Positions 1,677 to 54,709 of a stretch of 64,000 nt of DNA are shown piece by piece (position 1 is the first letter of the stretch; each line of letters starts with the position of its first letter). The position numbers and the translations under genes were made by a program. The DNA is from Tetramitus jugosus. Lineage: Eukaryota > Protista > Heterolobosea. Under the pieces are notes generated by a model that saw only the letters and a program-made list of their open reading frames with translations, made no database searches and was not told where the DNA came from. The stretch lies in NCBI GenBank assembly GCA_937625935.1, contig OW569385.1, positions 124,001 through 188,000 on the forward strand, given 5' to 3'.

Positions 1677-1749
1677 TACCGACGACGGGACTCGAACCCG
1701 CGACCACTGGATTAGAAGTCCAGTGCTCTTCCAGCTGAGCTACGACGGC
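1677..1749 (-). tRNA. tRNA-Arg (anticodon TCT)
   Basis: Reverse complement GCCGTCGTAGCTCAGCTGGAAGAGCACTGGA-CT-TCT-AA-TCCAGTGGTCGCGGGTTCGAGTCCCGTCGTCGGTA folds as a cloverleaf with A and B boxes; TTTT follows. Confidence 0.95.
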
Positions 1750-1827
1750 TAGATATTCGAGTGATTTGACTGATGCACTATGTGCGAAACAAAAAACGAA
1801 AATTTCGCTGGTGAAGCGAGCGGCGGC

Positions 1828-2090
1828 ATGATGAGGCTCACAGCGAGACAAGTGGCTCGAATTGTTAACACCTGCATCCACCCGTGAGGAGATCAAGCTT
1901 CGGCAAACATTCCAAAGGGAGAATGTCTTTCAGTCCAACAACAGGCTGGAGCTCATACCTCAAGTGGTGCGCGGAACGCCTGCACAACAACAATTTGACT
2001 ATCGCATATGGAGATGAGGTCAATTGTTTGGACTGTAACCTTGCCATGTCGCAGCCAAACGTTGTGACAAAGAAATTCTTTTACCTCTAT
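1828..2090 (+). mobile_element. Decayed, internally deleted ORF2 fragment of the tRNA-upstream non-LTR retrotransposon (R1)
   Basis: Translates to MMRLTARQVARIVNTCIHP, EIKLRQTFQ, ENVFQSNNRLE and SYLKWCAERLH..CLDCNLA, collinear with IMRLTARQVSRVVNTCIHP, DIKLHQTFQQENVFQSSNRLE and TYHKWCAIRMH..CDECRLA in ORF 25675..27258; boundaries approximate. Confidence 0.85.
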
Positions 2091-2161
2091 GGGAATATCA
2101 CTGGCTCTCAACACAAAAATAAGAGAATGTTTCTATGTTTATGTATGAAGTGATCACAAGC

Positions 2162-4165
2162 TTATCGCAGGAAATGATCCTGCAACAAATCATAAATTTC
2201 AGGATCTTGAAAATTGACTTCGTTTTGCAGAGAGGCAGACAGATCTTGCTCCTCTTCATATTCATCATCAATCTCCTCCATATCTAACAATTCACTATCC
2301 TGATCTGCATATCTTGTTTCTGAGAATTTGAACTTGACGAACCTTCTTTGATGTTCTTCGTTGTACACATCAAATGAATCCATGTGGAATGGAGCACGGT
2401 TAGTATACATGTATGAATCTTGATCCATCTTTTTCTGTGCTGTTCGTACAATTGATGAAGGAATCAAACTATTTGCAGATGCTACTTGCTGAGAACGAGG
2501 ACTGCTTCCGCCTCGCCTTGGTGTCTCTGCAGTCACGATACTACTACTACTGCTACCACTATTGATACCATTCGTAGAATGATCTACGGATGTATTGCCC
2601 GTGTTATTGTTGTTGCTGCTGTTGTTTGCAACAAAAGAGTGAACAATAGGAGACCCTCTCTTCATCATAATCGTATCAGCCTTTCTCCGAACAACCATGG
2701 AAGAAGAAGGCGAAGTGGAAGACATTCCATTACTACCACTACCATTATTGATCATGACATCTTCACTAGGGGAATTTGGTGTCGTTGCTTCTGATATTCT
2801 TCTCTTGAATCGATCAGAACGAGTGGCAATTTTGATGGCACCACTCGATGCAGCATAATTGAGTGGTGCCGTACTCGAAGCAGTGCTCGTGCTCATGTGT
2901 GTACCTGTTGTACTAGCTGTCGCTGTTCCCGTTGCTGTTGTAGACCTAGATGGATGAGCGAGAGAAGATCCAAAGCTCTTGTATCCATGATGATTGTTGT
3001 TACCTATGTTGTTATTGTTATTATGACTTGCCTGATTGTTCATCATGCTGCTGCCATTGTTACTACTGCCATTGCTACTACTGCCAATGCTACTGCTACT
3101 GTTGTTACTGTTCGTGTTTGTATCAGTGAAAACACGATTCAACTGATCATCCATTCTCATGACACTCATCATATCACCACCAGGAAAGTAAAAATCAGGA
3201 TCACGAATAAACTCTGTCATGAGACTGTTGCTAAACTTGGTGTCCTTGATGAGATCTTCTGTGCTCTGAACTTGATTGGTACGGAGAATGTTGGGAGCAA
3301 AGACAATGGCCAAATTATGGGCATTCATCTTGTTTTGAGCCTGATTCTTTGTTATACGGTACAGGAAATGACATAGCTGACTCAAGATTGTGAAATGACC
3401 CTTGGGCAAGAACTGTAGCACGTGCTTAATTTTCTCTTGCTTGGCGCGTGCGAGCATACTAGCGACACTCTCATCTTCTTCACTTGACGATCCACCACTA
3501 CCGCCGCCGTAAGCTTGATTTTTTTTGGCGGGCAATTTATTGGCGGCGGCAACCGCACTATTGTCATCCATGGCGCTCACCGCAATAAACATGTCATAGT
3601 TTTCAAATGAGAGCAACGGATCTTTTAGCTCTCTAAAGTATAGCTTTAGCAAGTTTGCAGCGACATGTGGGCCAACAGATCGATTATATTGCTCCAAAGG
3701 TATCACATAACGCCCCTCACTGTTCTCCAACTCTGAAATGACACTTTCCAGAATGTTGACTTGAGCAGAGAGACGAAAAATGCCTTCCACGTCGAGACAT
3801 TGATCCTCAATGTACCTCATACACTGATGAATAAAGGGTGGTAGTTCTCTGAGTGAATCAGGCACATTCTTGTGAAACACTTTGCTATTGACATATTTTG
3901 ACGTGTGTATTTGAGTCAAAATTTTTTGTGAAGCAGTGTTGTTTGTTGTTGTTGTAGCTATACATTGAGAATGGGTTGTTGCTGTTGCTACAGAAGAAGT
4001 ATTTGTTGTTGTTGTTGTTGGATGATGCTGATTATTGTTGTTGTTGCCGTGATTTGAAATCATTGTGGCGGTTCGTTTGATGAGACCAGGAAATGCCTTT
4101 TTCTTGACAATTTTTGGAGCTCCATTGTGAGTGTCAGTGGACGACGGAGGATGAGGGGTAGTCAT
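2162..4165 (-). CDS. RhoGAP domain protein with low-complexity tails
   Basis: EGIFRLS arginine finger, LLKLYFREL.DPL and NKMNAHNLAIVFAPNIL motifs. Confidence 0.93.
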   Translation of the reverse strand: MTTPHPPSSTDTHNGAPKIVKKKAFPGLIKRTATMISNHGNNNNNQHHPTTTTTNTSSVATATTHSQCIATTTTNNTASQKILTQIHTSKYVNSKVFHKNVPDSLRELPPFIHQCMRYIEDQCLDVEGIFRLSAQVNILESVISELENSEGRYVIPLEQYNRSVGPHVAANLLKLYFRELKDPLLSFENYDMFIAVSAMDDNSAVAAANKLPAKKNQAYGGGSGGSSSEEDESVASMLARAKQEKIKHVLQFLPKGHFTILSQLCHFLYRITKNQAQNKMNAHNLAIVFAPNILRTNQVQSTEDLIKDTKFSNSLMTEFIRDPDFYFPGGDMMSVMRMDDQLNRVFTDTNTNSNNSSSSIGSSSNGSSNNGSSMMNNQASHNNNNNIGNNNHHGYKSFGSSLAHPSRSTTATGTATASTTGTHMSTSTASSTAPLNYAASSGAIKIATRSDRFKRRISEATTPNSPSEDVMINNGSGSNGMSSTSPSSSMVVRRKADTIMMKRGSPIVHSFVANNSSNNNNTGNTSVDHSTNGINSGSSSSSIVTAETPRRGGSSPRSQQVASANSLIPSSIVRTAQKKMDQDSYMYTNRAPFHMDSFDVYNEEHQRRFVKFKFSETRYADQDSELLDMEEIDDEYEEEQDLSASLQNEVNFQDPEIYDLLQDHFLR

Positions 4166-4865
4166 TCTTTTTTTACACTGCTAAAAAAAATGGATATATT
4201 GTTGTTGCTTTTGTTTTTGTTGTTGTTTTGATATGAATAATATTATTATTGGCTTCTTTGCTAGTGCTCACACCCAAACTTTTCGAGTGTCAGATATTGA
4301 TGTGTTGTTGTTTCGTGTTCGGTGTGATGTTGTTCGTTCCTTTGTGTTCTAGTGCTGTGGAAATAGTACCTTGGTAAGTCACTCATGCAAGCCTTATTCT
4401 CACTTGGTTTTTTCGTGTTCAACAAAAAAAGTGTTTTAATTGTGGGGCTGTTTCTTTTTACGACGAGATTGGTTGTTGGATGTCGGATACGCATCAACGA
4501 CAAGGCGTCTCATTCAAACGTCAAATACATTCGGTTTCGGAGATTCGCGTTCTTCCACCACCTGATCGGGCTGGAAGGTTTTTGGAGACGCTTCAGAGGG
4601 TCAAAGTTTGGCGCTCACAAGAGGTTCCGCACTGTCTTGGAAGGTATTCCATGTTGAATGCCACACGTTTTTGTTTATTCGGGTTGCAAAGACACACACG
4701 GAATATTTGATTGATGGATTGAATGCATTGTAAGTAGTACAAATCATCCATTGGCCGCTTCGTCCCAGAAGGTTTCACAGAATAAAGTAGAAAAGATCCA
4801 CTTCGTCCCCCATTCAACCTCAACCAGATCAAAGCAACACTCCATCGCGCTGTTCATTGTGAAGT

Positions 4866-21591: not shown

Positions 21592-21716
21592 TTGACCATT
21601 GCATATACTTTGGGGATACTTTTTGACTCATTGAACAAACTCATACAACTTGTCATTTACATCACTGACACAGGCAATGAAGTCCCCCTTATCTCATCTT
21701 ATGACTTGCACTCTTG
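21592..21716 (-). mobile_element. ORF1 fragment of the retrotransposon family (G2)
   Basis: Nucleotide similarity to 30492-30623 (ttgaccattgcat..tggggat.cttttgactcattgaa..atgacttgcactcttg); FNESKSIPKVYAMV vs FNESKRIPKAHAMV. Confidence 0.8.
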
Positions 21717-21717
21717 G

Positions 21718-23560
21718 ATTCTGACACGATGTTGCAGTCGTCAACGTACGCAATGTTCCAGATCCTTTGAGAGAGTGCCTGTTATCCAGAAACTCTTCGT
21801 TGCGCAAACATGAGGACTGTTTGATGTACCAATACATACGTGGGGGACAACGAGTCCCCTTGTCTCGTGCCCTTGTTGACTTTGAAGGGTCTCGAGAACT
21901 GTCCTGCTAATACTTGTGCCTCATTGTTCGACACCATATCAATGACGAAATTGGTGATGTTGTCTGGGTAGCCGAAGATAAGTTAATAAAAGGTATAGTT
22001 GTTTCTGCCTCCTATTCGCATCATCGACAACCTTATACTGTGTCCACCTTACTCTTCTGGCCTTCTTTGCTGTCGATGACGCAAAGAACAGACTCGAATT
22101 AATATGCTCTGACGTTCTCGCTTTCCAGATCCACTTGCGGAATTGGCGATCATTTGACCTACGCCTCTTAAGCCATACTTGTTCATGAGATGGTCCAACT
22201 TTGGGATCGACAATGTGCGATTCTCTATTGAATCAATCAACACTAACCTATGCTGAACAAGCCGTCTGGTCCGTCTATTTTCCCTCACTCTCTTTTCCTC
22301 TTTCCTAACTCGAAAGCATTGGGCGTGATTAACGATCGTGGAGGTAATAAGATCGCATTGCATATTAACATCATCAATGTCCGTGATACCCAGTGTTTTC
22401 AATTCATCTAACAGTCCTTGTCCACTTTGGGTCATCCTTCTCCTAGGGAAGCAATGAGCTGTCAGGATGGGTCCTCGGCACCTACTGACAGTACTCGCTA
22501 CTTTCAGCTTCACCTCAATCGGTAAGTGGTCACTCCTGGTGCCGTTCTGGGAGTAGATTCCAACTCTCTGGATGTCGACTATTGTTTTCCTGCTGCACCA
22601 GACTGTGTTGAGTCTTGATGAGCAGTTCCAAATAGTATGCTTCCATCCAGACGTCCAGATGATCTGTCCGTTCTATTAATTACAGTGTTACGGTCTCCCC
22701 CCATTAACACTTTTCCTTCAACGCTGATCTTGTTCAACACGGCGGAGAGTTTTTCGTAATGTTCCTCACTTCTCATATGTGGACAATAATGATTGACCAG
22801 CGTGTAACTGGTTGATCCTATGCTGATACTCAGGCTTGTATTCTGTCGCTGGAGTGGATGATTCCATAGCTGTCCACTGAAGTGACCTTGATGATTGTCG
22901 CTACATACTTACTTGGTGTGTCGCACAAAAGGACACAATTGATTCTCTCCAGCATTCTGTTGACCCTCTAACAAAAGCGTTCATCCATTTTGCTTGCTTC
23001 CTGGATCATAATCACATCAATACTCTCTGTCGCTATAACGTTGAACGTTAACGATATCATGGATCTTTCTAAGCACTTGTAAAGACTTCTTGTTTCTTTG
23101 CAACGAGAGTTCCTTAATTTGCTTCTCTAATGCCTCAATCTTACTGCTTAGACTTTTCACCATGTCGGTATCTTTGATCTTAAGCATTCTCTTTCTTGTT
23201 TTCTTGTTCGTATCTTCCGTTCTTTCTACATACTTGCTTACAGATCCATTTGGTACTTCAAGTGATTCCATCACTGCCCGAGCATACGACTTTGACTGCA
23301 TGGTACCGAATGCTGTACTACCATTGATGGCCCCTTATCGTTACCGATCATAGATTTGATATTGTTCTCTGTTTTGCCGGTGACATTGTGGACAACAACT
23401 TTCTTGTCGTTGTCTATTCCTTCTCTTCACATCTGCTCTCATATGGGAGTTATTCTCTTTGTTGAAGAGTTCAACAAAATCATACAAATTATCATCCTTT
23501 ACTTACCTCCGGAGAGGATGGAATTGTTTGCGTTTTTTTCGGCATTTTTTGTTTTTTTGT
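21718..23560 (-). mobile_element. Heavily deleted non-LTR retrotransposon upstream of tRNA-Gln (G1): ORF1, endonuclease and RT remnants
   Basis: ATG at 23545 (MPKKTQT); ORF1 pieces QSKSYARAV..YVER; endonuclease pieces IDVIMIQEA, INCVLLCDTP, GGDRN, SDHLP; RT pieces KGTRQGDSLSP (~21845-21880) and IWNIAYVDDCN (~21730-21765). Confidence 0.9.
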
Positions 23561-23595: not shown

Positions 23596-23666
23596 TCTCC
23601 TATGGTCTAGTGGTATGATAGCGGACTTTGAATCCGTTGACGGTGGTTCGATTCCACCTAGGAGAA
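23596..23666 (+). tRNA. tRNA-Gln (anticodon TTG)
   Basis: TCTCCTA/TAGGAGA acceptor stem, GCGGA-CT-TTG-AA-TCCGT anticodon arm, GGTTCGATTCC B box, TTTTT terminator at 23667. Confidence 0.95.
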
Positions 23667-23686: not shown

Positions 23687-24874
23687 TCATTGCTTCACCA
23701 TATTGATAATGTCGGCCTTACCAGGTAGACCGTTGACATTGTACCAGACAACTCCTAACATAATGTACCTCTTGGCTCTTGTTAAGAAGGCATCCCTCTG
23801 TCGAATCGTTGGTAAGTGAGCAGGGGTATTGATCAATTTCCTTTTCCTCTCATTCGTCTGAGACCCAGTTGAGAGCTTGTGCACCTTATCCCTCTTAACT
23901 GGTCTTGATTGTTCAGACATATTTCTGCCAATTAGTGGACAAGTTTTTTGTCGTTGTCAAGCCCTTTCTGGATAAATGCCTTGGCATTTTTCACACACTT
24001 TCTTGCATTGAAATGAGCCACAAACTCATATATTTCATCTTTCTTGATGTTGAGCCATGCAACCTTGTAGTAGGACCGTCGATGGACACAGAGCCATCTG
24101 TTTTTTTTTCTTGTCTTGGGCCTTGTTGCTCCTCAGATCACCCAGTGTGATCCTAGCACCCCTCTTCTTGTTGTCATTGAGTTGTGGACTCTGAATCTCC
24201 TTTTCGGAGTCATCATCCACATCAACAATGACTGGTTCGTCCTCAGTCAAAACATACCTTTTGCGTGCACTGGCTAGTGCCAATGCAGCAATTTCCTTCT
24301 TCGCTCTTGCGAACACTGGAGAAGTGGCATTCACTTGCTCCAGGATTTGATCTTTGTCAACCTCTTGTTGACAGCCTTGAGAGGATCATGTGGTCTCTCG
24401 ACGTATCGAGTGACCGTGGCCTTGACCTTTTGCTCTCCGCTGAGCACTGCTTGTGCATAGGTTTCATCACCCATGACCACGAAAGCAGTGTCACCCTTCT
24501 TGAGCACACTGGCAACCTTCTCAGGTCCCAGTAGCTTCTTGATGTCGTCCACTGACATGTTCTTCATGCCATGGACGACCACCTTTCTTGTGCAATCAAC
24601 ACTGCGCTTGGGTGCAGCAGTGCTGTTGCCAATCCTCCTCTCTTTGTTGAACAACTCAACAAAGTCATAGATGCGGTCACCCTTGACCGTCACCCATGTA
24701 ACAAAGCGTTGCTGGCCTTTCCTTTTGATGACCTGGACTCGGTTGAGCCAGTAATGACGACCTCTCTGTCACTTGGCCTCGTGCCTATCCGTGCAGTGGT
24801 CCACACTGCATAACGACTGTTGCCGTATTCCTTCACCAAATTTGTTGAATCACCAGACACGTGATTCCGTTTTT
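23687..24874 (-). mobile_element. 3'-truncated, degenerate element T4 (MSGDSTN-type ORF1 plus start of ORF2)
   Basis: ORF1 nearly identical to 31117..31977 but start mutated to GTG and carrying deletions; continues into MLGVVWYNVNGLPGK, homologous to the ORF2 start MLNVVWYNINGIKGK, and ends ~20 bp from the tRNA-Gln 3' end. Confidence 0.9.
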
Positions 24875-24890
24875 TTCTGCGTTTTTATCA

Positions 24891-25533
24891 TTTTTTTTTT
24901 AAATACAACCATTTCGGTTGCTTAGATTTTATTTTCTGACTATTTACACTGGATAACGCTCGAAGAGCGTTATCTCCTCCGTTACTTTTCATTTCTCACA
25001 ATGACGCTCTACGAGCGTCATTGTTATGTGTCTTCCTTGTGTGAGATGAATAGGTGATGAAGGGTCGACGCACCTCCTCTTCACCCTGTTCACGAATGAT
25101 TTCGCTTTCTTTTCCGCCATGACCTTCTTCACACCGTTCATCCTCAAACCTTTTGTTACTTGTTCCACTGCTTTATTTTCAACCCCCATCATACCAGATA
25201 GGAACTCCTTGCTTGTCTTACGATTTTCTCTCACCGAAATTTTACCATCCATCCACACAACATTATCAAACCATATATCGATTTGCTGCTTATGATGAAC
25301 ACCCAGCTTGTCAAGGTCTTTACCTACGGACAATGCCAGTCTTCTTCGGCGCACGATGGCCCTTGGACAGCGTATGAGACAGTGTTGTATCGTCTCTGGC
25401 TCTTTGAGACATCGCTCACATCTTTCCATCTTCATCCTTGCCATAAAGACAGCGCTTTGTCTCTTTTGTGTGAAGAGTACCGCTGCGCACTTGAGCATAG
25501 AACCACTCCACTTGCCTATTGATCTTGTGGGGG
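24891..25533 (-). mobile_element. 5'-truncated retrotransposon copy T3 (C-terminal CCHC region, 3' UTR, A10 tail)
   Basis: CERCLKEPETIQHCLIRC..IDIWFDNV..VKRRC homologous to the ORF2 C-terminus; poly(A); flanked by TTCTGCGTTTTTATC at 24875-24889 and 25534-25548. Confidence 0.92.
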
Positions 25534-25674
25534 TTCTGCGTTTTTATCTTTTTTTTTTTTTTTTTTAATACAACCATTTCGGTTGCTCACTTTATTGTCA
25601 ATACATTTTCATCAGCCATCGCTCTTTGAGCGATGGCTCTTGGTCGTCTGATTAATTCCCAATGACGCAGAGCG

Positions 25675-29471: not shown

Positions 29472-30817
29472 TGATTAGGTGGTTGGGAATCAGTCTCGTT
29501 TGGCTCATCATTTTGAACTTGACTAGCCGATTGTGCATCACTGTTTGATGACAGCAACATGGATTTCTTTCTTCTCCTCTCAGAAAGCGGGATGTGAGCT
29601 CCTCTTTTGCCTCCTTCTTTGATTGGAGTATCACTATTTTCAGTCTGCTCAGAGGTCAAAAACCGGTGCATTGTTGCTTGTTTGTCTCGAATGAGACTTC
29701 TTAATCTTCTTGTCTTTTGACGCTCTGACATGTTGGAATTCACGTCAGTTAGGTGCTCAAAGGTTATCATAGAGCTTGCCATGACGGAAGTTGCCATGCC
29801 TTCAGTACTTAGTGCTGACTCCCAACTGTCACTTGAATCCTCCACTTCACTGGTGACAAATGACCCGCGGTTTACTTCAGAGACAGGTTCACTTGTCTCT
29901 CTCTCCACTGCACAGTCCACCACAACTGCCTCTACCTGGTTTTCCATAGGACTATCCCTTTCTGGGTCACCGATTACTTCCACCAGCATCATTGCTGTTC
30001 CGCTTGGTTCGGAGTCTCCATGCACATCCTCAACTGTGTCTACTTCCTCTTCTTCCGTGACCATGTCACTCTCATCCTCGACTTCTTCTGAGAGCTGTGG
30101 TGCTCTTCCTTTGCTCCTGAGTCCCTTATCTGCACCTGCTTTCTTGGGGCGACCACTGTTCCTTTTACCGAAAGTGCTTTCGAGTTGAACAACTCTCATT
30201 TGAAGAGACTCAATTTGCCTTGTTAGTTGTGCCTTCATTTTCTTGAATCTCTTGGTTAGTTCAGTTAGTGGATCGCTTTTTCTTTCATAGTATGGGCTGA
30301 TTTCCGCCACAATCGTCTTACTGCCAACCACAGCCTGTGCATACGTCTGATTTGTCATCGTTACAAATGCGACATCACCTTTTTTCTCCACGTGCTTCAC
30401 CTTTTCAACACCGAGGAGTCTCGCTATGTCATCCTTTGATTGTCTTTCCATTTTGTGCACTACAAGTTTCTTCTCACTGTCGATTCCTCTCTTGACCATT
30501 GCATGTGCTTTGGGGATTCTTTTTGACTCATTGAAAGCGTCTACAAACTCATACAACCTGTCATTCACAACATTGACCCATGCAATAAAGTCACCCTTGT
30601 CCCATCTAATGACTTGCACTCTTGTGACCCAATCACCATATTGCATCCCAATTGCTTTGGCCATTGCTGAGTGTGTTCTGTGACATTCCGTCCCTTTGAT
30701 TACCACTTCCTTTTTGTTCATTCCGCTTCCATTGATCAGTGTCGTCCATACTGCGTATCCGTCACGAACATACTCGCGCACGCCCTTAGAGGATGAGATG
30801 TTTGTTTGTTTTTTCAT
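29465..30817 (-). CDS. Retrotransposon ORF1 protein (RRM-like region, coiled coil, acidic tail), MKKQTN subfamily
   Basis: 450-aa intact ORF directly 5' of ORF2, overlapping it by 7 nt (ATGTTGA); KLVVHKM..AFVTM..YAQAV RRM-like pattern followed by heptads. Confidence 0.85.
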   Translation of the reverse strand: MKKQTNISSSKGVREYVRDGYAVWTTLINGSGMNKKEVVIKGTECHRTHSAMAKAIGMQYGDWVTRVQVIRWDKGDFIAWVNVVNDRLYEFVDAFNESKRIPKAHAMVKRGIDSEKKLVVHKMERQSKDDIARLLGVEKVKHVEKKGDVAFVTMTNQTYAQAVVGSKTIVAEISPYYERKSDPLTELTKRFKKMKAQLTRQIESLQMRVVQLESTFGKRNSGRPKKAGADKGLRSKGRAPQLSEEVEDESDMVTEEEEVDTVEDVHGDSEPSGTAMMLVEVIGDPERDSPMENQVEAVVVDCAVERETSEPVSEVNRGSFVTSEVEDSSDSWESALSTEGMATSVMASSMITFEHLTDVNSNMSERQKTRRLRSLIRDKQATMHRFLTSEQTENSDTPIKEGGKRGAHIPLSERRRKKSMLLSSNSDAQSASQVQNDEPNETDSQPPNQC

Positions 30818-30845
30818 AGCGTTTTTTCTGCGTTTTTATCATTGC

Positions 30846-32013
30846 TTTTTTTTTTTTTGTTCCATACAACCATGTGTGCTTGCGCAGCAAGCGCACGATT
30901 GCTCATTTATTGACTTGTTTTGTGAGTGACGACCCGTAGGGCGTCATTCACTCTTCTTCTCTTGTTGTCCCCGACGGTGCACCTACAGGTTGAAAGAATC
31001 ACTCTGGTGAGTGTTTTGGTTGATGCTCTTCATCAAAGAGCGTAACCTTGTAGTAGGACCGCCGATGGACACAGAGCCATCTGTTGTTTTTTTCTTGTCT
31101 TGGGCCTTGTTGCTCTTCAGATCACCCAGTGTGATCCTGGCACTCCTTTTCTTGTTGTCATTGAGTTGTGGAGGATTTGCTGATTTTGAGTGCTGAGCTG
31201 TGCAACAGGCACTGTTGGCAGTGGTGTTGCACTCCTTTGTTCTTCTGCCTCCATTATATCAGGAGCAGTTCTTTGTGCAACTTCTTGTTCCGGTATTGGA
31301 ACCGGTTTGTTGCCCTCTAGACCCTTTGTCTTAGCCAATTCCTTGGTGAGTTCTGTGACCTGTCGACGCAGTGCGTCAACCACCGTCAGCAGCTCCTCGT
31401 ACATCTTCGTCAACCTCTTGTTGACAGCCTTGAGAGGATCATGTGGTCTCTCGACGTATCGAGTGACCGTGGCCTTTACCTTGTTCTCTCCGCTGAGCAC
31501 TGCTTGTGCATAGGTTTCATCACCCATGACCACGAAAGCAGTGTCACGCTTCTTGAGCACACTGGCGACCTTTTCAGGTCCCAGTAGCTTCTTGATGTCG
31601 TCCACTGACATGTTCTTCATGCCATGGACGACCACCTTTCTTGTGCAATCAACACTGCGCTTGGGTGCAGCAGTGCTGTTGCCAATCCTCCTTTGTTTGT
31701 TGAACAAATCAACAAAGTCATAGATGCGGTCACCCTTGACCGTCACCCATGCAACAAAGCGTTGCTGGCCTTTCCTCTTGATGACCTGGACTCGGTTGAG
31801 CCAGTCATCAAACTCCTCTCCAATCTTTCTTGCCAATGCTGACTGAGAGACACCATTACCATTGCCAGTAATGACGACCTCTCTGTCACTTGGCCTAGAG
31901 CCTTTCCGTGCAGTGGTCCACACTGCATAACGGCTGTTGCCGTATTCCTTCACCAAATTTGTTGAATCACCAGACATGTGATTCCGTTTTTTTCTGCGTT
32001 TTTTTTTTTTTTT
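30846..32013 (-). mobile_element. ORF1-only non-autonomous element T1 (~1.17 kb)
   Basis: ORF1 31117..31977 (deletion-induced frameshift near the 3' end), no ORF2, 3' UTR and A13 tail; near-identical to 51881..53122; 5' A-run ends 47 nt from tRNA-Thr. Confidence 0.92.
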
Positions 32014-32060
32014 ATTATCATTACCATTGCTATCATACAGTCAAACCAGATAGTACAAAT

Positions 32061-32133
32061 GGCTCCTTAGCACAGGTGGCAGTGCGCTGTCCTAGTAAGA
32101 CAGAGGTCACGAGTTCGAGTCTCGTAGGAGCCT
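32061..32133 (+). tRNA. tRNA-Thr (anticodon AGT)
   Basis: GGCTCCT/AGGAGCC acceptor stem, CTGTC-CT-AGT-AA-GACAG anticodon arm, AGTTCGAGTC T-loop; TTTT shortly downstream. Confidence 0.95.
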
Positions 32134-32227
32134 GAACGTTTTGCTCCAGCAACAAACTTTCTGGGCGCCAAAACTGGATTGAAAAGTCAACCAAAATTTT
32201 CCATCAAACAAGCAACATCTTCGAAAA

Positions 32228-32806
32228 ATGATCAGAACTGCAGCATCACGCATCCTCAGACAACAACAATCTCTATCGACCGCTCGTTGTTCCTTCTTCA
32301 CCAACTCTCGCGTCCTTCACAACAAAAACACTCAATATGAAAGCGAGGAACCCACAGCAGCTGAAGAAGAGCTCTTTAATCAAATGGAGAGTGAAGCTTC
32401 CGCCAAAAAATCCTTCAAAATGCGTGCCACTCTCAACAAGGCCATCATTTGTGGTAGAGTAGGTGCCACACCAAACGTAAAGTTGGGCAGTGAAGCTACT
32501 GCTGATGCACCAGCAAAGAAGGGCTTTGGTCTAGTGAACCTTGCCACGAGTGATACTTACCTAAAGGATGCCAATGGTAAGAATGCAGTCACATGGCACG
32601 CCATTATCACATTCCATCCAAACATTCTTTCCATTTTGAACAAGTATGTTCGCAAGGGAATGTTGGTCTATGCGGAAGGACCCATCATTTATAGACAATC
32701 AAAGGACAAGGACGGTAATCCTCGGACTGTGACTCAAATCTTGGTGCGTGAACCAAGTGATTTTAGAGTGTTGGACGGAGAGGTCTCTCTTGATCAAGAC
32801 AAGTAA
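32228..32806 (+). CDS. Mitochondrial single-stranded DNA-binding protein (SSB family)
   Basis: Arg/Ser-rich transit peptide; LNKAIICGRVG, LATS, WH, KGMLVYAEG OB-fold motifs. Confidence 0.88.
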   Translation: MIRTAASRILRQQQSLSTARCSFFTNSRVLHNKNTQYESEEPTAAEEELFNQMESEASAKKSFKMRATLNKAIICGRVGATPNVKLGSEATADAPAKKGFGLVNLATSDTYLKDANGKNAVTWHAIITFHPNILSILNKYVRKGMLVYAEGPIIYRQSKDKDGNPRTVTQILVREPSDFRVLDGEVSLDQDK

Positions 32807-33123
32807 AAACGACAGTACTCATGGAATTCTTGTTTTTTATTTGGGAATAAAGATGGCATTATTATATAATATACCACCGAAAAAAAAAGATGTGCTTTTA
32901 ATTATATCTAAGTAGTGTACAGGAAATCGATTTCTTTTGTCAAGGTTGTTGCATTCGAGATTATGTTATACTTGGATTGTATATGGGCCAATGATTGTTG
33001 TGCAGCATTGCTGGTGTGCACAGATCTCCACGCAAAATGTCGCGACTCAACAAATCAACAACACCACACACAACAACAATCAACAACAGCGCAACACACC
33101 TCTGGACAGACAAAGAATCATCA

Positions 33124-33534
33124 TTACTTTTTAAGCTTTTTCACAAAAGCTTCATAATCAATATCACCATCCTCATCCATTCCCATATCCTTCAACAACT
33201 CTTCAATATCCGTCACTGTCATCTTTTCACTCTGCAAAATCTTCTTGAGTTCCTCCGACGAAACATGCCCGTTATTTCCCCGATCAAACACGCGGAACGC
33301 TTCCAGTAAATCATCGCTCTGTGACTCATCTCTCATCAATCGACTCATCAGTGCCAAAAAATTGGCAAATTCACATTCACCCTTTGGACCACATGCCTTT
33401 GATACTTCACGTTCAATTTCATCACGTGAAATGCACCCAACTGCCTCCAATGTTTTTTGTAATTCGTCTCTTGTTAATTTTCCGTCACCGTTTCGGTCAA
33501 ATAGTGAGAATGCCTCTCGAAGTTCTTGATCCAT
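33124..33534 (-). CDS. Calmodulin-like EF-hand protein
   Basis: ELREAFSLFDRNGDGKL, EAFRVFDRGNNGHV, DEDGDIDYEAF. Confidence 0.9.
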   Translation of the reverse strand: MDQELREAFSLFDRNGDGKLTRDELQKTLEAVGCISRDEIEREVSKACGPKGECEFANFLALMSRLMRDESQSDDLLEAFRVFDRGNNGHVSSEELKKILQSEKMTVTDIEELLKDMGMDEDGDIDYEAFVKKLKK

Positions 33535-50270: not shown

Positions 50271-51752
50271 ATGTTGAACTCATCTCGTTGCGTGGCTTTG
50301 CTTGTTGTACTTTTGCTATTTCTGTCTGCCATGTCCGTTTTTTCATCTAGTTCTTTTGGAAGTGATGTTCATGTGTGCCAATCTAAATTTTCTCAATGGA
50401 TGGATGACTGGTTGTCCAGGAACGAAGGCAGAGCCTCATTTGGAGTATCCGTGCGTAGTTTGAACCCAGAATCAACGTTCAACTATCAGTACAATGCCAA
50501 AAAATTATTCCAACCTGCATCAACAAACAAGGTGTTGACGACTGTTGCTGCCCTCGTAAATCTTGGAAGTGCCTACCAATTCCGTACTCGTATTCTGATT
50601 GACAAGAATACGAAGAGGAGATTAAGGATTGAAATGACGGGTGATCCTTCGTTGTCTAGCACTGTTTTAGTCGATAAGATCAAGTCTCTATCGATTGAAG
50701 GCTCCATAGAAACAGTCGAAGTGGATATCTCTGCGTTCAAGAACACTGCTCCATTGCCTGACAGCTGGGAATTTGGTGACTTGGGTTATGATTATGGTGC
50801 TCAGCCTAGCTGTTCAGTTTTGGACCATAATTTCGTAATTTTTCGGATATCACCTGGAGCAAGTGTTGGCCAGCCGCTGAGTGTTGTTCAGTTAAACGAT
50901 CAAGGAACACCGACAATATGGGAGAATGTTTCTGTTTTTGGACTAAAGGACACTAGAACAGTAGATAATCAAGAGACGAATATTCGAGAGCCTGATTTGT
51001 TTTATCGACCGGGTGAGGACGCGTTGCGAATTGTGGGTCAAATGAAGTTGGGTGCTAAGAGTGTTGATATCGTTCGATCTGTGATGAAGCCTGATGAGTA
51101 TATTGCCAAGACGGTTGCAAGGATGGTTGGCGCACGCAACAGCACCGTAACAAGCGAACCACCAGGCGAGAATTATGTTTCCATTGGCACAATACTGTCT
51201 GAGCCGATAACCGTACTCATGAACAAAACCTTGTTAGAGTCTGACAATTTATATGCCGAATTGTTCATGCGTCAACTCGGTGTTCTCAAATCAAAGAGTG
51301 CTAGTGACAACATTGAACAGATTGGGATTGAACGAGTGAGATCTGTCTTGGTGGACGCTCTGGGTGTAACGGCTGACTCATTCAGGCAAGCTGATGGTTC
51401 AGGATTGTCGCGACAAAACTTGGTGAGCCCTCAAAGTTTAGTAGAAACATTCTATCACCTCTATCAAAGAGATCGCTCCTTATTCAAGTTGTACAAATCC
51501 ATGCTTCCAGTGGGAGGAGTGAGTGGTACTCTTAAGAACAGATTTGTTGATTACCCAGGAGTTGTTCAGGCCAAGACTGGAAGCATGACGGGTGTGATAT
51601 CTCTTTCTGGTCTTGTGGACAGTTTTATGCCAAACCACGACCCATACTTGTTCGCATTTATCGTTAACCAGTCTTCTCTCACCTCTTCCCAGATCAGGAA
51701 AGCAATGGATGAAGTTGTAATTGCCCTCCACCAGATGGATCGAAGTTGCTAA
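50271..51752 (+). CDS. Secreted D-Ala-D-Ala carboxypeptidase/endopeptidase (peptidase S13, PBP4/DacB-like)
   Basis: Signal peptide; PASTNK (SxxK), SDN (SxN), DGSGLSR, AKTGS (KTG). Confidence 0.93.
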   Translation: MLNSSRCVALLVVLLLFLSAMSVFSSSSFGSDVHVCQSKFSQWMDDWLSRNEGRASFGVSVRSLNPESTFNYQYNAKKLFQPASTNKVLTTVAALVNLGSAYQFRTRILIDKNTKRRLRIEMTGDPSLSSTVLVDKIKSLSIEGSIETVEVDISAFKNTAPLPDSWEFGDLGYDYGAQPSCSVLDHNFVIFRISPGASVGQPLSVVQLNDQGTPTIWENVSVFGLKDTRTVDNQETNIREPDLFYRPGEDALRIVGQMKLGAKSVDIVRSVMKPDEYIAKTVARMVGARNSTVTSEPPGENYVSIGTILSEPITVLMNKTLLESDNLYAELFMRQLGVLKSKSASDNIEQIGIERVRSVLVDALGVTADSFRQADGSGLSRQNLVSPQSLVETFYHLYQRDRSLFKLYKSMLPVGGVSGTLKNRFVDYPGVVQAKTGSMTGVISLSGLVDSFMPNHDPYLFAFIVNQSSLTSSQIRKAMDEVVIALHQMDRSC

Positions 51753-51763
51753 ATAAAAGGGAT

Positions 51764-51837
51764 TACAGGCTATGAGAATCGAACTCATGACCTTAACGGT
51801 GTAAACGTTACGTTCTAACCGACTGAACTAAGCCTGC
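51764..51837 (-). tRNA. tRNA-Val (anticodon TAC)
   Basis: GCAGGCT/AGCCTGT acceptor stem, TAACG-TT-TAC-AC-CGTTA anticodon arm, AGTTCGATTC T-loop, TTTT downstream. Confidence 0.95.
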
Positions 51838-51880
51838 TTTCTCTATAAATAGATTTTTGAATTGTTATTGGACGTTATTT

Positions 51881-53122
51881 TTTTACAGAAAAAAACGGAA
51901 TCACATGTCTGGTGATTCAACAAATTTGGTGAAGGAATACGGCAACAGCCGTTATGCAGTGTGGACCACTGCACGGAAAGGCTCTAGGCCAAGTGACAGA
52001 GAGGTCGTCATTACCGGCAACGGTAGTGGTGTCTCTCAGTCAGCATTGGCAAGAAAGATTGGAGAGGAGTTTGGTGACTGGCTCAACCGAGTCCAAGTCA
52101 TTAAAAGGAAAGGCCAGCAACGCTTTGTTGCATGGGTGACGGTCAAGGGTGACCGCATCTACGAGTTTGTTGAGTTATTCAACAAACAGAGGAGGATTGG
52201 CAACAGCACTGCTGCACCCAAGCGCAGTGTTGATTGCACAAGAAAGGTGGTCGTCCATGGCATGAAGAACATGTCAGTGGACGACATCAAGAAGCTACTG
52301 GGACCTGAGAAGGTTGCCAGTGTGCTCAAGAAGCGTGACACTGCTTTCGTGGTCACTCGATACGTCGAGCGGCCACATGATCCCCTCAAGGCTGTCAACA
52401 AGAGGTTGACGAAGATGTACGAGGAGCTGCTGACGGTGGTTGACGCACTGCGTCGACAGGTCACAGAACTCACCAAGGACTTGGCAAAGACAAAGGGTCA
52501 AGAGAGCAACAAACCGGTTCCGATACCGGAACTAGAAGTTGCACAAAGAACTGATCCAGATCTAATGGAAGCAGAAGAACAAAGGAGTACAACACCACTG
52601 CCAACAGTGCCTGTTGTACAGCTCAGCGCTGAAAATCAGCAAATACTGGAGCAAGTGAATGCCACTTCTCCAGTGTTTGCCAGAGTGAAGAAGGAAATTG
52701 CTGCATTGGCACTTGCTGCTGCACGCAAAAGGTATGGTTTGACAGAGGACGAACCAGTCATTGTGGATGTGGATGATGACTCCGAAAAGGAGATTCAGAG
52801 TCCACAACTCAATGACAACAAGAAAAGGAGTGCTAGGATCACACTGGGTGATCTGAGGAGCAACAAGGCCCAAGACAAGAAAAAAACAACAGATGGCTCT
52901 GTGTCCATCGGCGGTCCTACTACAAGGTTACGCTCTTTGATGAAGAGCATCAACCAAAACACTCACCTGAGTGATTCTTCCAACCTGTAGGTGCACCGTC
53001 GGGGACAACAAGAGAAGAAGAGTGAATGACGCCCTACGGGTCGTCACTCACAAAACAAGTCAATAAATGAGCAATCGTGTGCTTGCGCACACTTGGTTGT
53101 ATGGAACAAAAAAAAAAAAAAA
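51881..53122 (+). mobile_element. ORF1-only non-autonomous element V1 (~1.24 kb) with perfect 15-bp TSD
   Basis: TATTGGACGTTATTT at 51866-51880 and 53123-53137; A15 tail; starts 43 nt from the tRNA-Val 5' end. Confidence 0.95.
51905..52990 (+). CDS. ORF1 protein (MSGDSTN subfamily), 361 aa, open
   Basis: Homologous to ORF1 29465..30817 (YAVWT, EVVI.G, RVQVI, VVH.M, AFV, Y.ER..DPL); carries a 63-nt in-frame deletion relative to T1. Confidence 0.85.
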   Translation: MSGDSTNLVKEYGNSRYAVWTTARKGSRPSDREVVITGNGSGVSQSALARKIGEEFGDWLNRVQVIKRKGQQRFVAWVTVKGDRIYEFVELFNKQRRIGNSTAAPKRSVDCTRKVVVHGMKNMSVDDIKKLLGPEKVASVLKKRDTAFVVTRYVERPHDPLKAVNKRLTKMYEELLTVVDALRRQVTELTKDLAKTKGQESNKPVPIPELEVAQRTDPDLMEAEEQRSTTPLPTVPVVQLSAENQQILEQVNATSPVFARVKKEIAALALAAARKRYGLTEDEPVIVDVDDDSEKEIQSPQLNDNKKRSARITLGDLRSNKAQDKKKTTDGSVSIGGPTTRLRSLMKSINQNTHLSDSSNL

Positions 53123-53150
53123 TATTGGACGTTATTTGAAGTAGTTATGT

Positions 53151-53920
53151 CACATAGAAAACAGGAAGCATCTGCAGTCACTATTTGACCAGGAAAGGAA
53201 CAGAAGAGTGGAAGAATGTGTGAGAGGTGGTGGTTACAAAAGGCCGTTAGTAGAAGTGAAGCGGACTTCAGCTTCCTCAAAAATCCCCACAGTATAGACA
53301 GGCAGCTTGTGTGGTTTCAGATGCAAGTCCTCAGTGGGACGCTCCATACCGCAGAGGTTGTAAGAGTCCTCTACAACTCAGACAACAATCCCACCAAATG
53401 CGTATGGTGCAGTCAGGAGCCCGAAAGTGTGCTCCACTGTCTAATTCGGTGCCCTAGAGCGGTTCGTGCCAGAAGATGCCTCGCTATGACGGTGGCAGCA
53501 GAAATTATCAAGATGGGGGTTGCCGATACCAGCTGTATCAATATATGGTTCGACAATGTGAGGATAGTAGGCGGAGAAGTGGTCAGGAGACCGTTGAGAA
53601 GAACGAGCCGGGAGTTCCTGATGGGAATGATGGGTGTTGAGACAGAGACCGTCAGCGACATCGCGGAAGGTCTGATAGCAAATGGAGTAAAGACAGCAAC
53701 GGCAGATAAGATAACTAAAACTTACGTGAATAGTGTGAAACGGAGATGCCTCACGACTCTACTCCACCTATTCACGCAACGAAAGAGAAACAACAGCAAT
53801 GACGCTCTCCGAGCGTCATTGGGGAATCAAAATGGTGACCAAGGGCCACCGCTCTGCGAGCTATGGCTAATGAATATAACAGACAATAAAGTGAGCAACC
53901 GATATGGTTGTATTAAAAAA
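53151..53920 (+). mobile_element. 5'-truncated copy V2 (ORF2 C-terminus, 3' UTR, poly A)
   Basis: ERWWLQK..CVWCSQEPESVLHCLIRC..KRRCLTTLLHLFT; flanked by ATTTGAAGTAGTTATGT at 53134-53150 and 53921-53937. Confidence 0.93.
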
Positions 53921-53937
53921 ATTTGAAGTAGTTATGT

Positions 53938-54261
53938 AAGCGGAGGAAAACATTGGGTATTGAAACAAGGCCGCTGAAACAAGTGATCAAAGGACTGACG
54001 AAGAGTGGGATGGAGAAGAAGAAGGCAAGTGAGAAGGCCCAACAATTTGTCGATCATACAAAGAGTAGGTGTGTGGAGGTGATGCGACGCCTCTTCACGT
54101 GTTCAAAGGAGATTGCTGGTTGCTAATGCTCTACGAGCATTTGCAACTACTTAAATCAATAGTGACGGCATTCTGCCGTCACGAAACCGATACAGAGAAT
54201 CAACAAAGAAGGAATCAACAAAGAAGTAAAATGAGCAATGGTTGTATTTTAAAAAAACAAA
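53938..54261 (+). mobile_element. Severely 5'-truncated copy V3 of another subfamily
   Basis: GIET..QVIKGLTKSGMEKKKASEKAQQFVDHTKSRC matches the ORF2 end; hairpin 3' UTR, ATGGTTGTATT and A tail; TSD repeated at 54262-54277. Confidence 0.88.
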
Positions 54262-54278
54262 ATTTGAAGTAGTTATGC

Positions 54279-54381
54279 TACCGTAGAAGATCCAGTTGAG
54301 TTGGATCTCTGTAACTCCGACTGCGAGTTACAGAGTCACCACCTCACGCACCATTTGTTGAATTGCTTTGTTGAAAAAAAA
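54279..54381 (+). mobile_element. ~100-nt hairpin-rich retroposed unit V4
   Basis: Bounded by TTGAAGTAGTTATGC and TTGAAGCAGTTATGC, ends in A8, contains two stem-loops. Confidence 0.65.
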
Positions 54382-54389
54382 TTGAAGCA

Positions 54390-54709
54390 GTTATGCAGTG
54401 TGGGCCACTGCACGGAAAGGCTCTAGGCCAAGTGACATTGGCAAAGGGTAAAGAAGTTCCAATATCGGAACTAGAAGTTGCACAAAGAACTGCTCCTGAT
54501 CTAATGGAGGCAGAAGAACAAAGGAGTTCAACACCACTGTCAACAGTGCCTGTCGTACAGCTCAGCGCCGAAAATCGGCTAATTCTGGAGCAAGTGAATG
54601 CCGCTTCTCCAGTGTTCGCCAGAGTAAAGAAGGAAATTGCTGCATTGGGCAGGTTGGAGATTCAGAGTCATCCACATTCTCAACGACTGGTTCGTCCTCA
54701 GTCAAACCA
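54390..54709 (+). mobile_element. Deleted ORF1 relic V5 with inverted terminal segment
   Basis: Matches 51951-51997 and ~52480-52710; 54665-54709 is the reverse complement of ~52735-52781. Confidence 0.85.

Follow-up and report, generated by a model that had tools for sequence, protein, structure and literature searches.

LINEs that target tRNA genes have been described only from dictyostelids, in which such targeting arose several times, the TRE elements not having been found in other Amoebozoa (PMC5006619). The TRE5 elements, whose ORF1 protein binds TFIIIB, insert upstream of tRNA genes at 40-54 bp and of 5S genes at 37-41 bp (PMC5911963, PMC3159450); TRE5 has been functionally defined by a location upstream of tRNA genes at the TRE5-like distance (Spaller et al. 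2016). NLTR-B of Polysphondylium (Heterostelium) pallidum, a LINE outside the TRE group, independently came to insert upstream of tRNA genes, at 39-64 bp (PMC5006619). A literature search found no report of tRNA-gene-targeting LINEs in Heterolobosea.

The 64-kb stretch of DNA analysed here (the window) contains exactly four tRNA genes, as identified with ARAGORN, which are those listed in the first-pass annotation:

1676-1749, minus strand: tRNA-Arg(TCT), target gene
23596-23666, plus strand: tRNA-Gln(TTG), target gene
32061-32133, plus strand: tRNA-Thr(AGT), target gene
51764-51837, minus strand: tRNA-Val(TAC), target gene

The proposal that sequence of one family lies upstream of all four, in a fixed orientation, was borne out by blastn and tblastn searches combined with the ARAGORN positions: at 4/4 genes the arrangement is head-to-head, with the sense strand of the element pointing away from the tRNA. 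No copy had been recognised away from a tRNA gene, and tblastn found none in the window, the seemingly remote sequences at 24061-25534 and 53154-54709 being older layers of stacks and the rest of the 64 kb holding no family sequence besides the tRNA-linked copies and stacks. At tRNA-Arg the family sequence is a relic, and at tRNA-Gln it is degenerate:

1828-2111, plus strand: 5'-truncated family relic from the C-terminal region of ORF2, lying 78 nt from the 5' end of tRNA-Arg in head-to-head orientation
21594-23502, minus strand: one or more old, degenerate autonomous copies upstream of tRNA-Gln (tblastn identities of 28-81%, every match on the minus strand)
23104-23502, minus strand: ORF1-like part of the tRNA-Gln copy
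22645-23039, minus strand: APE part of the tRNA-Gln copy
21713-22621, minus strand: RT part of the tRNA-Gln copy
21594-21714, minus strand: second ORF1 fragment at tRNA-Gln

The relic at tRNA-Arg matches the ORF2 C-terminal piece with 79-84% identity over short stretches in tblastn, and with 81% in blastn. At tRNA-Thr, the contiguous repeat 25546-31998 had appeared to be a single 6.4-kb element, but it actually consists of two stacked elements, a 1.3-kb ORF1-only element (S) and a 5.3-kb autonomous LINE (A); in the earlier reading of the abundant 'ORF1' element, its status as a separate, ORF2-less family (S) was overlooked. The layers of this stack are as follows:

30846-31998, minus strand: youngest layer, S copy with a 153-nt internal deletion at 31172
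25549-30832, minus strand: A element, 5.3 kb
24891-25534, minus strand: third layer (tblastn with the C-terminal piece, 48-55%; zf-RVT hint; junction sequences)
24061-24881, minus strand: fourth layer, an older, internally rearranged S copy (blastn, 95-97% to S)
23693-24186, minus strand: bottom (oldest) layer, ORF1-like and APE fragments (tblastn)

The target motif of tRNA-Thr (..ATGATAA..AAA) was found at 4/4 junctions of the stack, and in the older S copy the target-derived TGATAAAAA precedes the 5' CGCAG. The third layer has kept a 5' CGCAGAA, after which its sequence continues with the C-terminal part of ORF2 and the 3' end from a related family. The youngest S copy starts with CGCAG at 31998, 62 nt from the tRNA +1, so that the spacing of 47 nt initially given for tRNA-Thr holds only if a 15-nt A run is counted, while that of less than 80 nt for tRNA-Arg stands. 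RNA-library contigs extend into the 153 nt missing from this copy. Stacked copies are also found at tRNA-Val, where the S copy lies 46 nt from the tRNA +1:

51866-51880: target-site duplication flanking the Val S copy, repeat on the tRNA side TATTGGACGTTATTT, 15 nt, -43 to -29 from tRNA +1
51884-53120, plus strand: Val S copy, 1237 nt, poly(A) behind it (ORF 51905-52987, 361 aa)
53123-53137: target-site duplication flanking the Val S copy, second repeat
53154-53921, plus strand: second layer, the C-terminal part of ORF2 and the 3' end of a 5'-truncated copy from a related family (tblastn 65%, zf-RVT hint, 3' end match)
53953-54709, plus strand: deeper layers, with a C-terminal fragment (53953-54108) and S/S2-like ORF1 fragments (54271-54709)

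The A element of the window is the sole full-length copy of its subfamily found in the genome. It starts with CGCAGAAAAAACG, and its 3' UTR contains hairpins and AATAAA, then ..TGGTTGTATT(A)18; a related element in L044 starts at the same point, 46 nt from tRNA-Lys. Two overlapping reading frames make up the coding region:

29468-30817, minus strand: A ORF1, 450 aa
25678-29471, minus strand: A ORF2, about 1264 codons, encoding APE, RT and a C-terminal region rich in Cys

The ATG of ORF2 overlaps the stop codon of ORF1 (ATGTTGA). The window copy is defective, with an in-frame stop in ORF2 (28920-28922) and a frameshift near 27260; the frame is unbroken in other copies, for example as a 1116-aa frame in L034. 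In ORF2, Pfam searches detected RVT_1 (E = 1.3e-23), a weak zf-RVT and, just under Pfam's cut-off, Exo_endo_phos (E = 2e-4) with Exo_endo_phos_2 alongside, and the PDB matches were L1 ORF2p and R2 RT (E = 1e-16 to 1e-18). Searches for an RNase H domain gave no match in the 1116-aa frame of L034 (E <= 0.1) or in the ORF2 C-terminal piece of the window (E <= 1). Truncated copies start at 3014, 3767, 4590, 4686, 5177 and 5356, numbered along the stacked query of 6453 nt, in which A begins at position 1167, and always keep the 3' end. These families are APE-type non-LTR retrotransposons (LINEs): ORF2 of the autonomous kind has an N-terminal endonuclease ahead of the RT, and the poly(A) 3' ends, target-site duplications and 5'-truncated copies are marks of target-primed reverse transcription (TPRT).

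Mapping of copies with respect to Pol III genes demonstrated that the position and orientation specificity holds across the 26-Mb genome. Among 40 young copies, 28 adjoin a tRNA gene (one via a weak tRNA match), two adjoin a 5S rRNA gene and six more belong to tRNA-anchored stacks. The element starts 39-54 nt from the +1 of the Pol III gene in 23/24 measured S copies (median, 49), and 5'-truncated copies show the same spacing (52-56 nt). In the reverse test, 27 of the 53 sampled tRNA genes were occupied, 26 of the 27 head-to-head, with 188 HSPs in that orientation versus 3 in the other. Such a pattern is far beyond chance. Target-site duplications of at least 9 nt accompany 29/32 S copies; by tolerating one mismatch they are about 13-18 nt long and cover approximately -44 to -28, counted from the mature tRNA's first base, their near edge being 26-29 nt from the tRNA +1 in 18/24 copies. 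For the two S copies at 5S genes, the duplications are at -38 to -21 and -39 to -23. The elements turn their 5' end to the gene and point away from it with the poly(A) end. DNA upstream of tRNA genes is A+T-rich, and it had been noticed that the upstream flanks share no obvious sequence; indeed, the information content between -44 and -20 is below 0.3 bit per position in 53 tRNA upstream regions, and the target-site duplications of the S copies have no common motif. Exceptions are a 5'-truncated copy (C3:410028-412728) with no Pol III gene within 5 kb and an S copy (L030) only 10 nt from tRNA-Thr. Both U6 genes (n = 2) are empty of family copies. An environmental contig carries an ORF1 element, 50% identical, about 58 nt upstream of tRNA-Ser and head-to-head.

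S is 1.3 kb long, encodes ORF1 only and is present in at least 33 copies genome-wide, with the ORF (382-388 aa) intact in 29/33. The first bases, CGCAGAAAAAA, the 3' ..TGGTTGTAT..poly(A), and the 3' stem with AATAAA are common to S and A, and folding of the 3' UTR hairpins gave z values of -7.3 (A) and -3.2 (S). The ORF1 protein is predicted to consist of a tandem RRM fold followed by a long helix or coiled coil and a disordered tail. The N-terminal part of A ORF1 (218 aa) shares 45% identity with S ORF1 over 212 aa, and the pairwise dN/dS of S ORF1, approximately 0.27, is that expected of a frame under purifying selection. On these two values, S is a long-separate lineage and not a deletion product of A. 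Contigs of three RNA libraries, which are assembled and carry neither strand nor end information, cover S and hardly reach A; in an oligo-dT library one contig has a poly(A) loose end exactly at the S 3' end. S copies are up to 99% alike, that is, very young, while the sole full-length A of its subfamily is defective.

By taking these observations together, we consider it likely that several related LINE families integrate by TPRT at one fixed site upstream of Pol III genes, guided by the initiation complex. From the lack of a DNA motif at the insertion site we infer that the elements are tethered to this complex; thus, of the first-pass proposal of Pol III-guided integration, the specificity for site and orientation is borne out and extended to 5S genes, and guidance itself is consistent with the pattern. 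A protein contact with the initiation complex, most likely with TFIIIB, which is the factor common to tRNA and 5S promoters, would place the cutting complex so that the first nick occurs approximately 21-23 nt upstream of the Pol III start, and target-primed reverse transcription would then insert the element at this fixed point. The duplication would rebuild the DNA upstream of the tRNA, so that the gene would still be usable and the target restored for the next insertion; repeated insertion at one site leads to stacks with the youngest element next to the gene. S would be mobilised in trans by the ORF2 protein of an autonomous relative, as is TRE5-A.2 in Dictyostelium. A further, tentative and rather doubtful, suggestion is that the elements have no promoter of their own, given that the 5' UTRs are only 21 nt (S), 15 nt (A) or 2-5 nt (sister families) long and are preceded by variable oligo(A), with the TFIIIB-bound, nucleosome-free target DNA acting as their divergent promoter and the S ORF1 protein packaging the RNA and docking on TFIIIB. 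If so, the target site would double as element promoter as well as safe harbour, and the S lineage would persist through the packaging and TFIIIB docking carried out by its tandem-RRM ORF1 protein.

It is unlikely that the elements are positioned by something in the host besides TFIIIB, be it a Pol III subunit, TFIIIC, a nucleosome-free gap or the first upstream nucleosome. Pol III, like TFIIIB, is present at both tRNA and 5S genes, so that the two are indistinguishable here, and a precedent exists in Ty1, whose integrase binds the Pol III subunit AC40 (PMC7459421). TFIIIC, on the contrary, is bound inside the gene and differently at tRNA and 5S promoters, and the near edge of the duplication, varying by only a few bases (26-29 nt, 18/24), is tighter than the nucleosome-guided insertion of Ty1, which extends up to about 1 kb upstream (PMC5911963).

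The host, a free-living amoeba, is probably a heterolobosean and not a dictyostelid, as moderately supported by comparisons of its genes. A single frame of 488 aa encodes DHFR fused to TS, such a fusion being a bikont marker, and the Cu-ATPase is 52-53% identical to that of Naegleria versus 48-49% to those of dictyostelids; the GC content is 42%. Among the best 150 of 65,910 RT matches, all of the approximately 11 named proteins are animal or algal (arthropod, charophyte) and, within this set, the RT appears to have no close named relative. It is improbable that the elements are true TRE5 relatives whose targeting was inherited from a very old ancestor or horizontally transferred from or to a dictyostelid, even by taking into account that they share with TRE5 the target window, orientation, 5S targeting, the layout of ORF1 followed by APE, RT and zinc finger and an ORF1-only derivative (PMC5911963, PMC3159450). 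Outside the close relatives (P0001 and short fragments) RT identity drops to 27-32%, the UTRs with A, B and C modules are absent, and the failure to find TRE elements in Physarum, Acanthamoeba and Protostelium (PMC5006619) means that an ancient origin needs many losses. The suggestion of a non-dictyostelid host with a possibly independent origin has thus gained moderate support from the DHFR-TS fusion, the Cu-ATPase and the RT matches, independence being likely and the TRE5-like targeting probably a convergent, separate invention.

Recognition by the endonuclease of DNA sequence or shape upstream of Pol III genes, for example of a TATA-like stretch, with no protein tether, would have a precedent in the sequence-specific APE-type endonucleases of the LINEs R1, TRAS and Tx1, and the A+T-richness of tRNA upstream regions could be quoted in its favour. 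Given the low information content and motif-free duplications described above, and that the unrelated flanks of tRNA and 5S genes are hit at matching distances, it is very improbable. Random insertion with selective survival of tRNA-adjacent copies may be practically dismissed since, although the genome is gene-dense so that most random insertions would be harmful, selection cannot yield a window of a few bases, one orientation and repeated use of the same 13-nt target, and copies 99% alike are already at the target site.

The same -45 to -50 window, orientation and 5S targeting are now met in a second, very distant host, which suggests that the geometry of the Pol III initiation complex itself dictates the docking site of LINEs. 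An independent system thus becomes available for locating the contact surface with the Pol III machinery. The family is young, as judged from copies up to 99% alike and their presence in RNA libraries, and its long-lived ORF1-only partner, under purifying selection, makes the question of ORF1p versus ORF2p as target-setter addressable by comparison with TRE5-A. A fixed, harmless insertion site may also serve as a practical model for safe-harbour gene insertion.

When the functional definition of TRE5 is applied, the elements lie at the corresponding distance and orientation with respect to tRNA genes, and the outer edges of their 5S insertions (-38 and -39) compare with approximately 37-41 bp for TRE5. 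The likeness to TRE5-A/B/C of Dictyostelium discoideum and the TRE5-like elements of other dictyostelids, all of L1 type, comprises the tRNA window (40-54 bp versus 39-54 nt here), ORF1 and an ORF2 with APE, RT and Cys-rich tail, the poly(A) end and structured 3' UTR, an abundant non-autonomous ORF1-only form (TRE5-A.2 in Dictyostelium, S in the present case), and the occurrence of stacks and of 5'-truncated copies. Several features differ: the hosts of TRE5 are dictyostelids, whereas the present one is probably heterolobosean; TRE5 has modular UTRs (A+B at the 5' end, B+C at the 3' end, with a promoter module of about 200 bp), whereas no 5'/3' duplicated module was seen here and a 5' UTR of 2-21 nt is too short to hold such a promoter module upstream; ORF2 starts at an ATG of its own, which overlaps the stop codon of ORF1; S is a long-separate lineage rather than a deletion product of A; and the RT, as far as its named matches go, shows no closeness to that of TRE. 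NLTR-B provides the precedent for convergence on the same tRNA-upstream site, and differs in having RNase H after RT, and APE, RT and RNase H in three separate ORFs, the present elements having no RNase H match. Ty3 of Saccharomyces and DGLT-A of Dictyostelium, which use TFIIIB, likewise find a safe harbour within compact genomes by aiming at the DNA that TFIIIB occupies upstream of Pol III genes, but they are LTR elements that rely on an integrase and not on TPRT, with Ty3 inserting at the transcription start and DGLT-A 13-33 bp upstream. Finally, mammalian HAL1 ('half-L1') elements are long-lived non-autonomous LINE derivatives with a selected ORF1 only, which use the ORF2 protein in trans. 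S belongs to this ORF1-only type of non-autonomous LINE derivative, exemplified by TRE5-A.2 and HAL1, and would likewise be mobilised in trans; HAL1 has no target specificity, whereas S keeps the targeting upstream of Pol III genes.

Exactly four tRNA genes were identified by ARAGORN in the window, and family sequence, as mapped by repeat finding, blastn and tblastn with pieces of the element proteins, was found to be confined to four blocks, each beginning directly upstream of one of these genes with the element sense strand pointing away from it:

1676-1749, minus strand: tRNA-Arg(TCT)
1828-2111, plus strand: family block beside tRNA-Arg
21594-23502, minus strand: family block beside tRNA-Gln
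23596-23666, plus strand: tRNA-Gln(TTG)
23693-31998, minus strand: family block beside tRNA-Thr
32061-32133, plus strand: tRNA-Thr(AGT)
51764-51837, minus strand: tRNA-Val(TAC)
51884-54709, plus strand: family block beside tRNA-Val

The same searches detected no family sequence in the other ~47 kb of the window. The first-pass annotation, which had described adjoining upstream family sequence in a fixed orientation at all four genes and no copy away from a tRNA gene, is borne out on these points, and its element-to-tRNA spacings were correct to a few bases. Close to tRNA-Val, an intact ORF of 493 aa (50271-51752, plus strand), ending 12 nt from the tRNA gene, carries a complete D-Ala-D-Ala carboxypeptidase domain of bacterial type (Peptidase_S13, E = 3e-65) and is a candidate for horizontal acquisition by a eukaryote.

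Two elements can be distinguished in the block beside tRNA-Thr, namely S, a short ORF1-only element, and A, an autonomous LINE with ORF1 and an APE-RT-Cys-rich ORF2:

30846-31998: S, ~1.3 kb, with a 153-nt internal deletion in this copy
25549-30832: A, 5.3 kb
29468-30817: ORF1 of A, 450 aa
25678-29471, minus strand: ORF2 of A, ~1264 codons

A reading of this region as one 6.4-kb, three-ORF element (6453 nt, 25546-31998) was rejected, the stretch being S stacked on A. Its first 1153 nt stand alone at at least 33 other genome sites, where the copies carry an extra 153 nt at query position 827 and a poly(A) end followed by unrelated DNA, and at loci L044 and L068, where related elements lie 46 and 51 nt away from tRNA genes, these elements begin at query position 1166-1167. 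At the S/A junction, ..TGGTTGTATGGAAC(A)13 is followed by GCAATGATAAAAA and then by CGCAGAAAAAACGCTATG.., the three parts being, in this order, the tail of one element, 13 nt of target DNA and the head of the next.

In S, UTRs of 21 nt (5') and ~130 nt (3') flank a single ORF of 382-388 aa. In A, the ORF1 stop is overlapped by the ORF2 ATG (ATGTTGA). Pfam matches in ORF2 comprise an AP-like endonuclease, a reverse transcriptase and a weak zinc-binding RT tail, identifying the elements as APE-type LINEs. In the window copy, a stop codon (28920-28922) and a frameshift (near 27260) interrupt ORF2, which was searched piecewise, with no consensus built and no frame repaired; the frame is unbroken in other, 5'-truncated A copies (e.g. 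1116 aa in L034), and a domain search of the window pieces and of this 1116-aa frame found no RNase H domain. Both elements share the start CGCAGAAAAAA(A)CG and a 3' end formed by two hairpins, AATAAA, a short terminal stem and ..TGGTTGTAT..poly(A), with fold z-scores of −7.3 for A and −3.2 for S. The genome also contains S2, a second ORF1-only family, with an ORF1 49% identical to that of S and its last 25 nt identical to those of A, and further autonomous relatives with RTs 50-57% identical to that of A.

Over its N-terminal 212 aa, S ORF1 shows 45% identity to the ORF1 of A. A structure model built on 11 family ORF1 sequences (mean pLDDT 61, 70-86 for residues 10-210) contains two beta-alpha-beta domains, a long helix (181-218) and a second helix (263-297), and is disordered elsewhere. 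Foldseek matches to tandem-RRM proteins and to RRM-RRM-coiled-coil DBHS proteins, with E values down to 1.6e-6, indicate that ORF1p is an RNA-binding protein, like that of other LINEs, and probably multimeric.

Across the 26.35-Mb assembly (56 contigs, with the window at C42:124001-188000), 39 loci with young S and A copies were collected, yielding 40 copies, of which 34 retain the S 5' end intact and six are 5'-truncated A, placed as follows:

28 copies: adjoining a tRNA gene, at least 17 tRNA species, one match weak
2 copies: adjoining a 5S rRNA gene
6 copies: behind a family member itself adjoining tRNA-Leu, Trp, Ser, Glu, Pro or Ala
2 copies: no anchor gene assigned, one in a stack deeper than 6 kb and one a rearranged fragment at a contig end
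1 copy: truncated, no Pol III gene within 5 kb (C3:410028-412728)
1 copy: broken layer of a stack already counted, a rearranged S at the bottom of L034

In this mapping of the young S and A copies, a check of the kind proposed in the first-pass annotation, most lie at tRNA genes (28 of 40), at 5S genes (two) or in tRNA-anchored stacks (six). The copy at C3:410028-412728 (retrieved as L035, L097 and L105), a 5'-truncated, 98%-identical A whose ~5 kb of upstream DNA contains neither a tRNA nor a 5S nor any other Rfam gene, is the single clear exception to the targeting rule. That the tRNA gene might be part of the element was rejected, as at least 17 tRNA species and 5S genes are targeted and the target-site duplications (TSDs) exclude the gene. 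No element was found at either of the two U6 genes. The 5S rRNA genes are present in at least 47 near-identical single copies scattered over many contigs, neither in tandem nor on the rDNA unit; among 47 listed, one has an adjacent S copy by coordinates (C13:105984, S only). Contigs C54 and C56 carry tRNA genes at the same coordinates (941, 12773, 14364, 14438, 44585), and are probably an organelle genome assembled twice.

In the reverse direction, the 53 best-scoring nuclear tRNA genes from Infernal, chosen irrespective of elements, were inspected with 2 kb of upstream sequence each. Family homology was present at 27 of them, its edge lying 26-91 nt upstream (median 52), and the orientation claimed from the window holds beyond it, 26 of the 27 occupied genes being head-to-head, with the element 5' end facing the tRNA 5' end (188 HSPs versus 3). 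The observation is confirmed to be far beyond chance.

The geometry of insertion is narrowly defined. The distance from tRNA +1, the first base of the mature tRNA, to CGCAG, the first bases of the element, has a median of 49 nt, and 23 of 24 copies fall within 39-54 nt. TSDs of at least 9 nt were detected in 29 of 32 S copies, with a median of 17 nt as scored with one mismatch allowed and ~13-16 nt when exact, and span approximately −44 to −28 from tRNA +1. Their tRNA-proximal edge, which 18 of 24 copies have at 26-29 nt from tRNA +1, is the poly(A) joining point and therefore marks the first nick. The TSDs at the two 5S genes run from −38 to −21 and from −39 to −23. If a tRNA leader of ~5 nt is assumed, the first nick would lie ~21-23 nt ahead of the Pol III start in both gene classes. 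The 5'-truncated copies lie 52-56 nt from the tRNA gene, like full-length ones, as expected if the target, rather than the element 5' end, fixes the position. Between the TSD and CGCAG there is usually an oligo(A) of 0-14 nt that looks untemplated, almost all S copies (L001-L034) having 2-14 additional A's here, for which untemplated addition, transcription-start slippage and microhomology with poly(A) are candidate origins. In the stack at tRNA-Thr, a target-derived motif ..ATGATAA..AAA is found at all four junctions (GGTAATGATAAT(A)14, GCAATGATAAAAA, GATAAAAA and TGATAAAAA): the site was hit at least four times, and every insertion displaced the older copies away from the gene. At another tRNA-Thr(AGT) gene (L030, C24:419100-422070), the S 5' end (2668) and the tRNA (2679) are 10 nt apart, with a ~10-nt TSD extending into the first bases of the tRNA; off-register insertion and later deletion are both candidate explanations.

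With respect to what determines the site, recognition of a DNA motif finds little in its favour: the 53 tRNA upstream regions (L041-L093) carry <0.3 bit at each position from −44 to −20, being conserved only at −8 to −5 and −1 (..AATATCAA; A at −1 in 92%), and no common motif was found among the TSDs of S copies. The −8 to −1 motif immediately 5' of the tRNA coding regions, ..AATAT(C/A)NA, is possibly a host Pol III start or proximal promoter element. tRNA genes have internal A and B boxes and 5S genes an internal control region, and upstream of the start TFIIIB and Pol III are common to both. Since the two classes have this machinery, and no DNA sequence upstream of the start, in common, the simplest reading is that an element protein would dock on the assembled Pol III initiation complex, the protein being ORF1p or ORF2p and its partner TFIIIB or Pol III. 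The position-specific targeting upstream of Pol III genes proposed initially is therefore upheld by the fixed spacing, the use of both gene classes and the lack of a site motif, with guidance by the Pol III machinery as the inferred component. In vitro, TRE5-A ORF1p binds TBP, Brf1 and Bdp1 (PMC3159450, PMC5911963). For S ORF1p, a complex prediction with residues 1-300, the host TBP core and the Brf1 homology-II region gave a score of 0.00, which is no evidence on binding either way.

Identity among S copies is 93-99%, the ORF is intact in 29 of 33, and pairwise dN/dS is ~0.27, overall as well as when the 382-aa subfamily is compared with the 386-388-aa one. ORF1 has therefore evolved under selection during the amplification of S, in keeping with the strong cis preference of TRE5-A ORF1p (PMC3159450). 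The genome yielded no A-subfamily copy that is both autonomous and intact. In three metatranscriptome runs, contigs extend over S (30846-31992) and adjacent host genes, whereas A is covered by none except one low-depth contig, and in an oligo-dT run a loose end of T's coincides exactly with the S 3' end. DNA carry-over would cover multi-copy A too, so S RNA is probably present and polyadenylated, a suggestive reading of contigs that are strandless and lack transcript ends. In run X1 (same organism, library type not on record), where depth sums were compared across elements within 27410-33400, contig depth relative to flanking single-copy genes is ~150-300x for S and ~10-20x for A, with many odd internal joints within S; high copy number, high expression and an enrichment artefact are candidate causes of the excess over S.

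The host is probably a heterolobosean and very probably not a dictyostelid, as judged from its Cu-ATPase, whose best named matches are Naegleria lovaniensis (53%, 611 bits) and N. fowleri (52%, 608 bits) versus 48-49% identity and 513 bits for dictyostelids, and from a fused DHFR-TS with both domains in a single 488-aa open frame (C52:224782-226053, minus strand; L107/L108). The DHFR-TS fusion is a 'bikont' marker, not known from Amoebozoa and opisthokonts. GC content is ~42%.

RT relatives were sought by a word-based and an exhaustive HMMER search. One relative was found at 59-60% identity (GCA_037189345.1), followed by short fragments at 43-70% and full-length proteins at only 27-32%. The namable matches in cluster look-ups were from an arthropod, an alga and one mis-binned MAG protein, and the longer namable ones are animal and algal LINEs. 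PDB scores are similar for R2 and L1 ORF2p, and so do not assign a LINE clade. No tRNA gene was found on the contigs of the distant relatives L040, L114, L115 and L116, which are too short or lack the 5' end. One of these (L115; GCA_037189325.1, JBBCKK010018384.1), from a sister assembly, has an RT ~26% identical, after which comes an ORF encoding an RNase H domain, and is another LINE type than the RNase H-less elements described here. On an environmental contig, an element with a 50%-identical ORF1 lies ~58 nt upstream of tRNA-Ser, head-to-head; the habit is therefore common to at least one relative outside this assembly.

A literature search retrieved no report of tRNA-targeting elements in Heterolobosea, and the word tRNA is absent from a 2026 survey of transposons in that group. 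TRE elements have been reported only from dictyostelids, where tRNA targeting arose at least six times (PMC5006619). TRE5 elements insert head-to-head upstream of tRNA genes, at 40-54 bp, and of 5S genes, at 37-41 bp, and consist of ORF1 and an APE-RT-ZF ORF2, with an ORF1-only derivative mobilised in trans (PMC5911963, PMC3159450). Distances, orientation, 5S targeting, ORF layout and the ORF1-only form are all matched here. The present elements differ in their host, in very short 5' UTRs without module structure, in an ORF2 with its own ATG, and in an ORF1-only lineage long separate from its autonomous relatives. The data support a system of TRE5-like, Pol III-upstream-targeting LINEs in a host far from Dictyostelium, whose targeting is most likely convergent with that of TRE5, a convergence on the −50 site for which NLTR-B, with its RNase H domain, provides a precedent. 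The kind of targeting is thus already known, and the elements are a further member of that functional kind rather than a new one.
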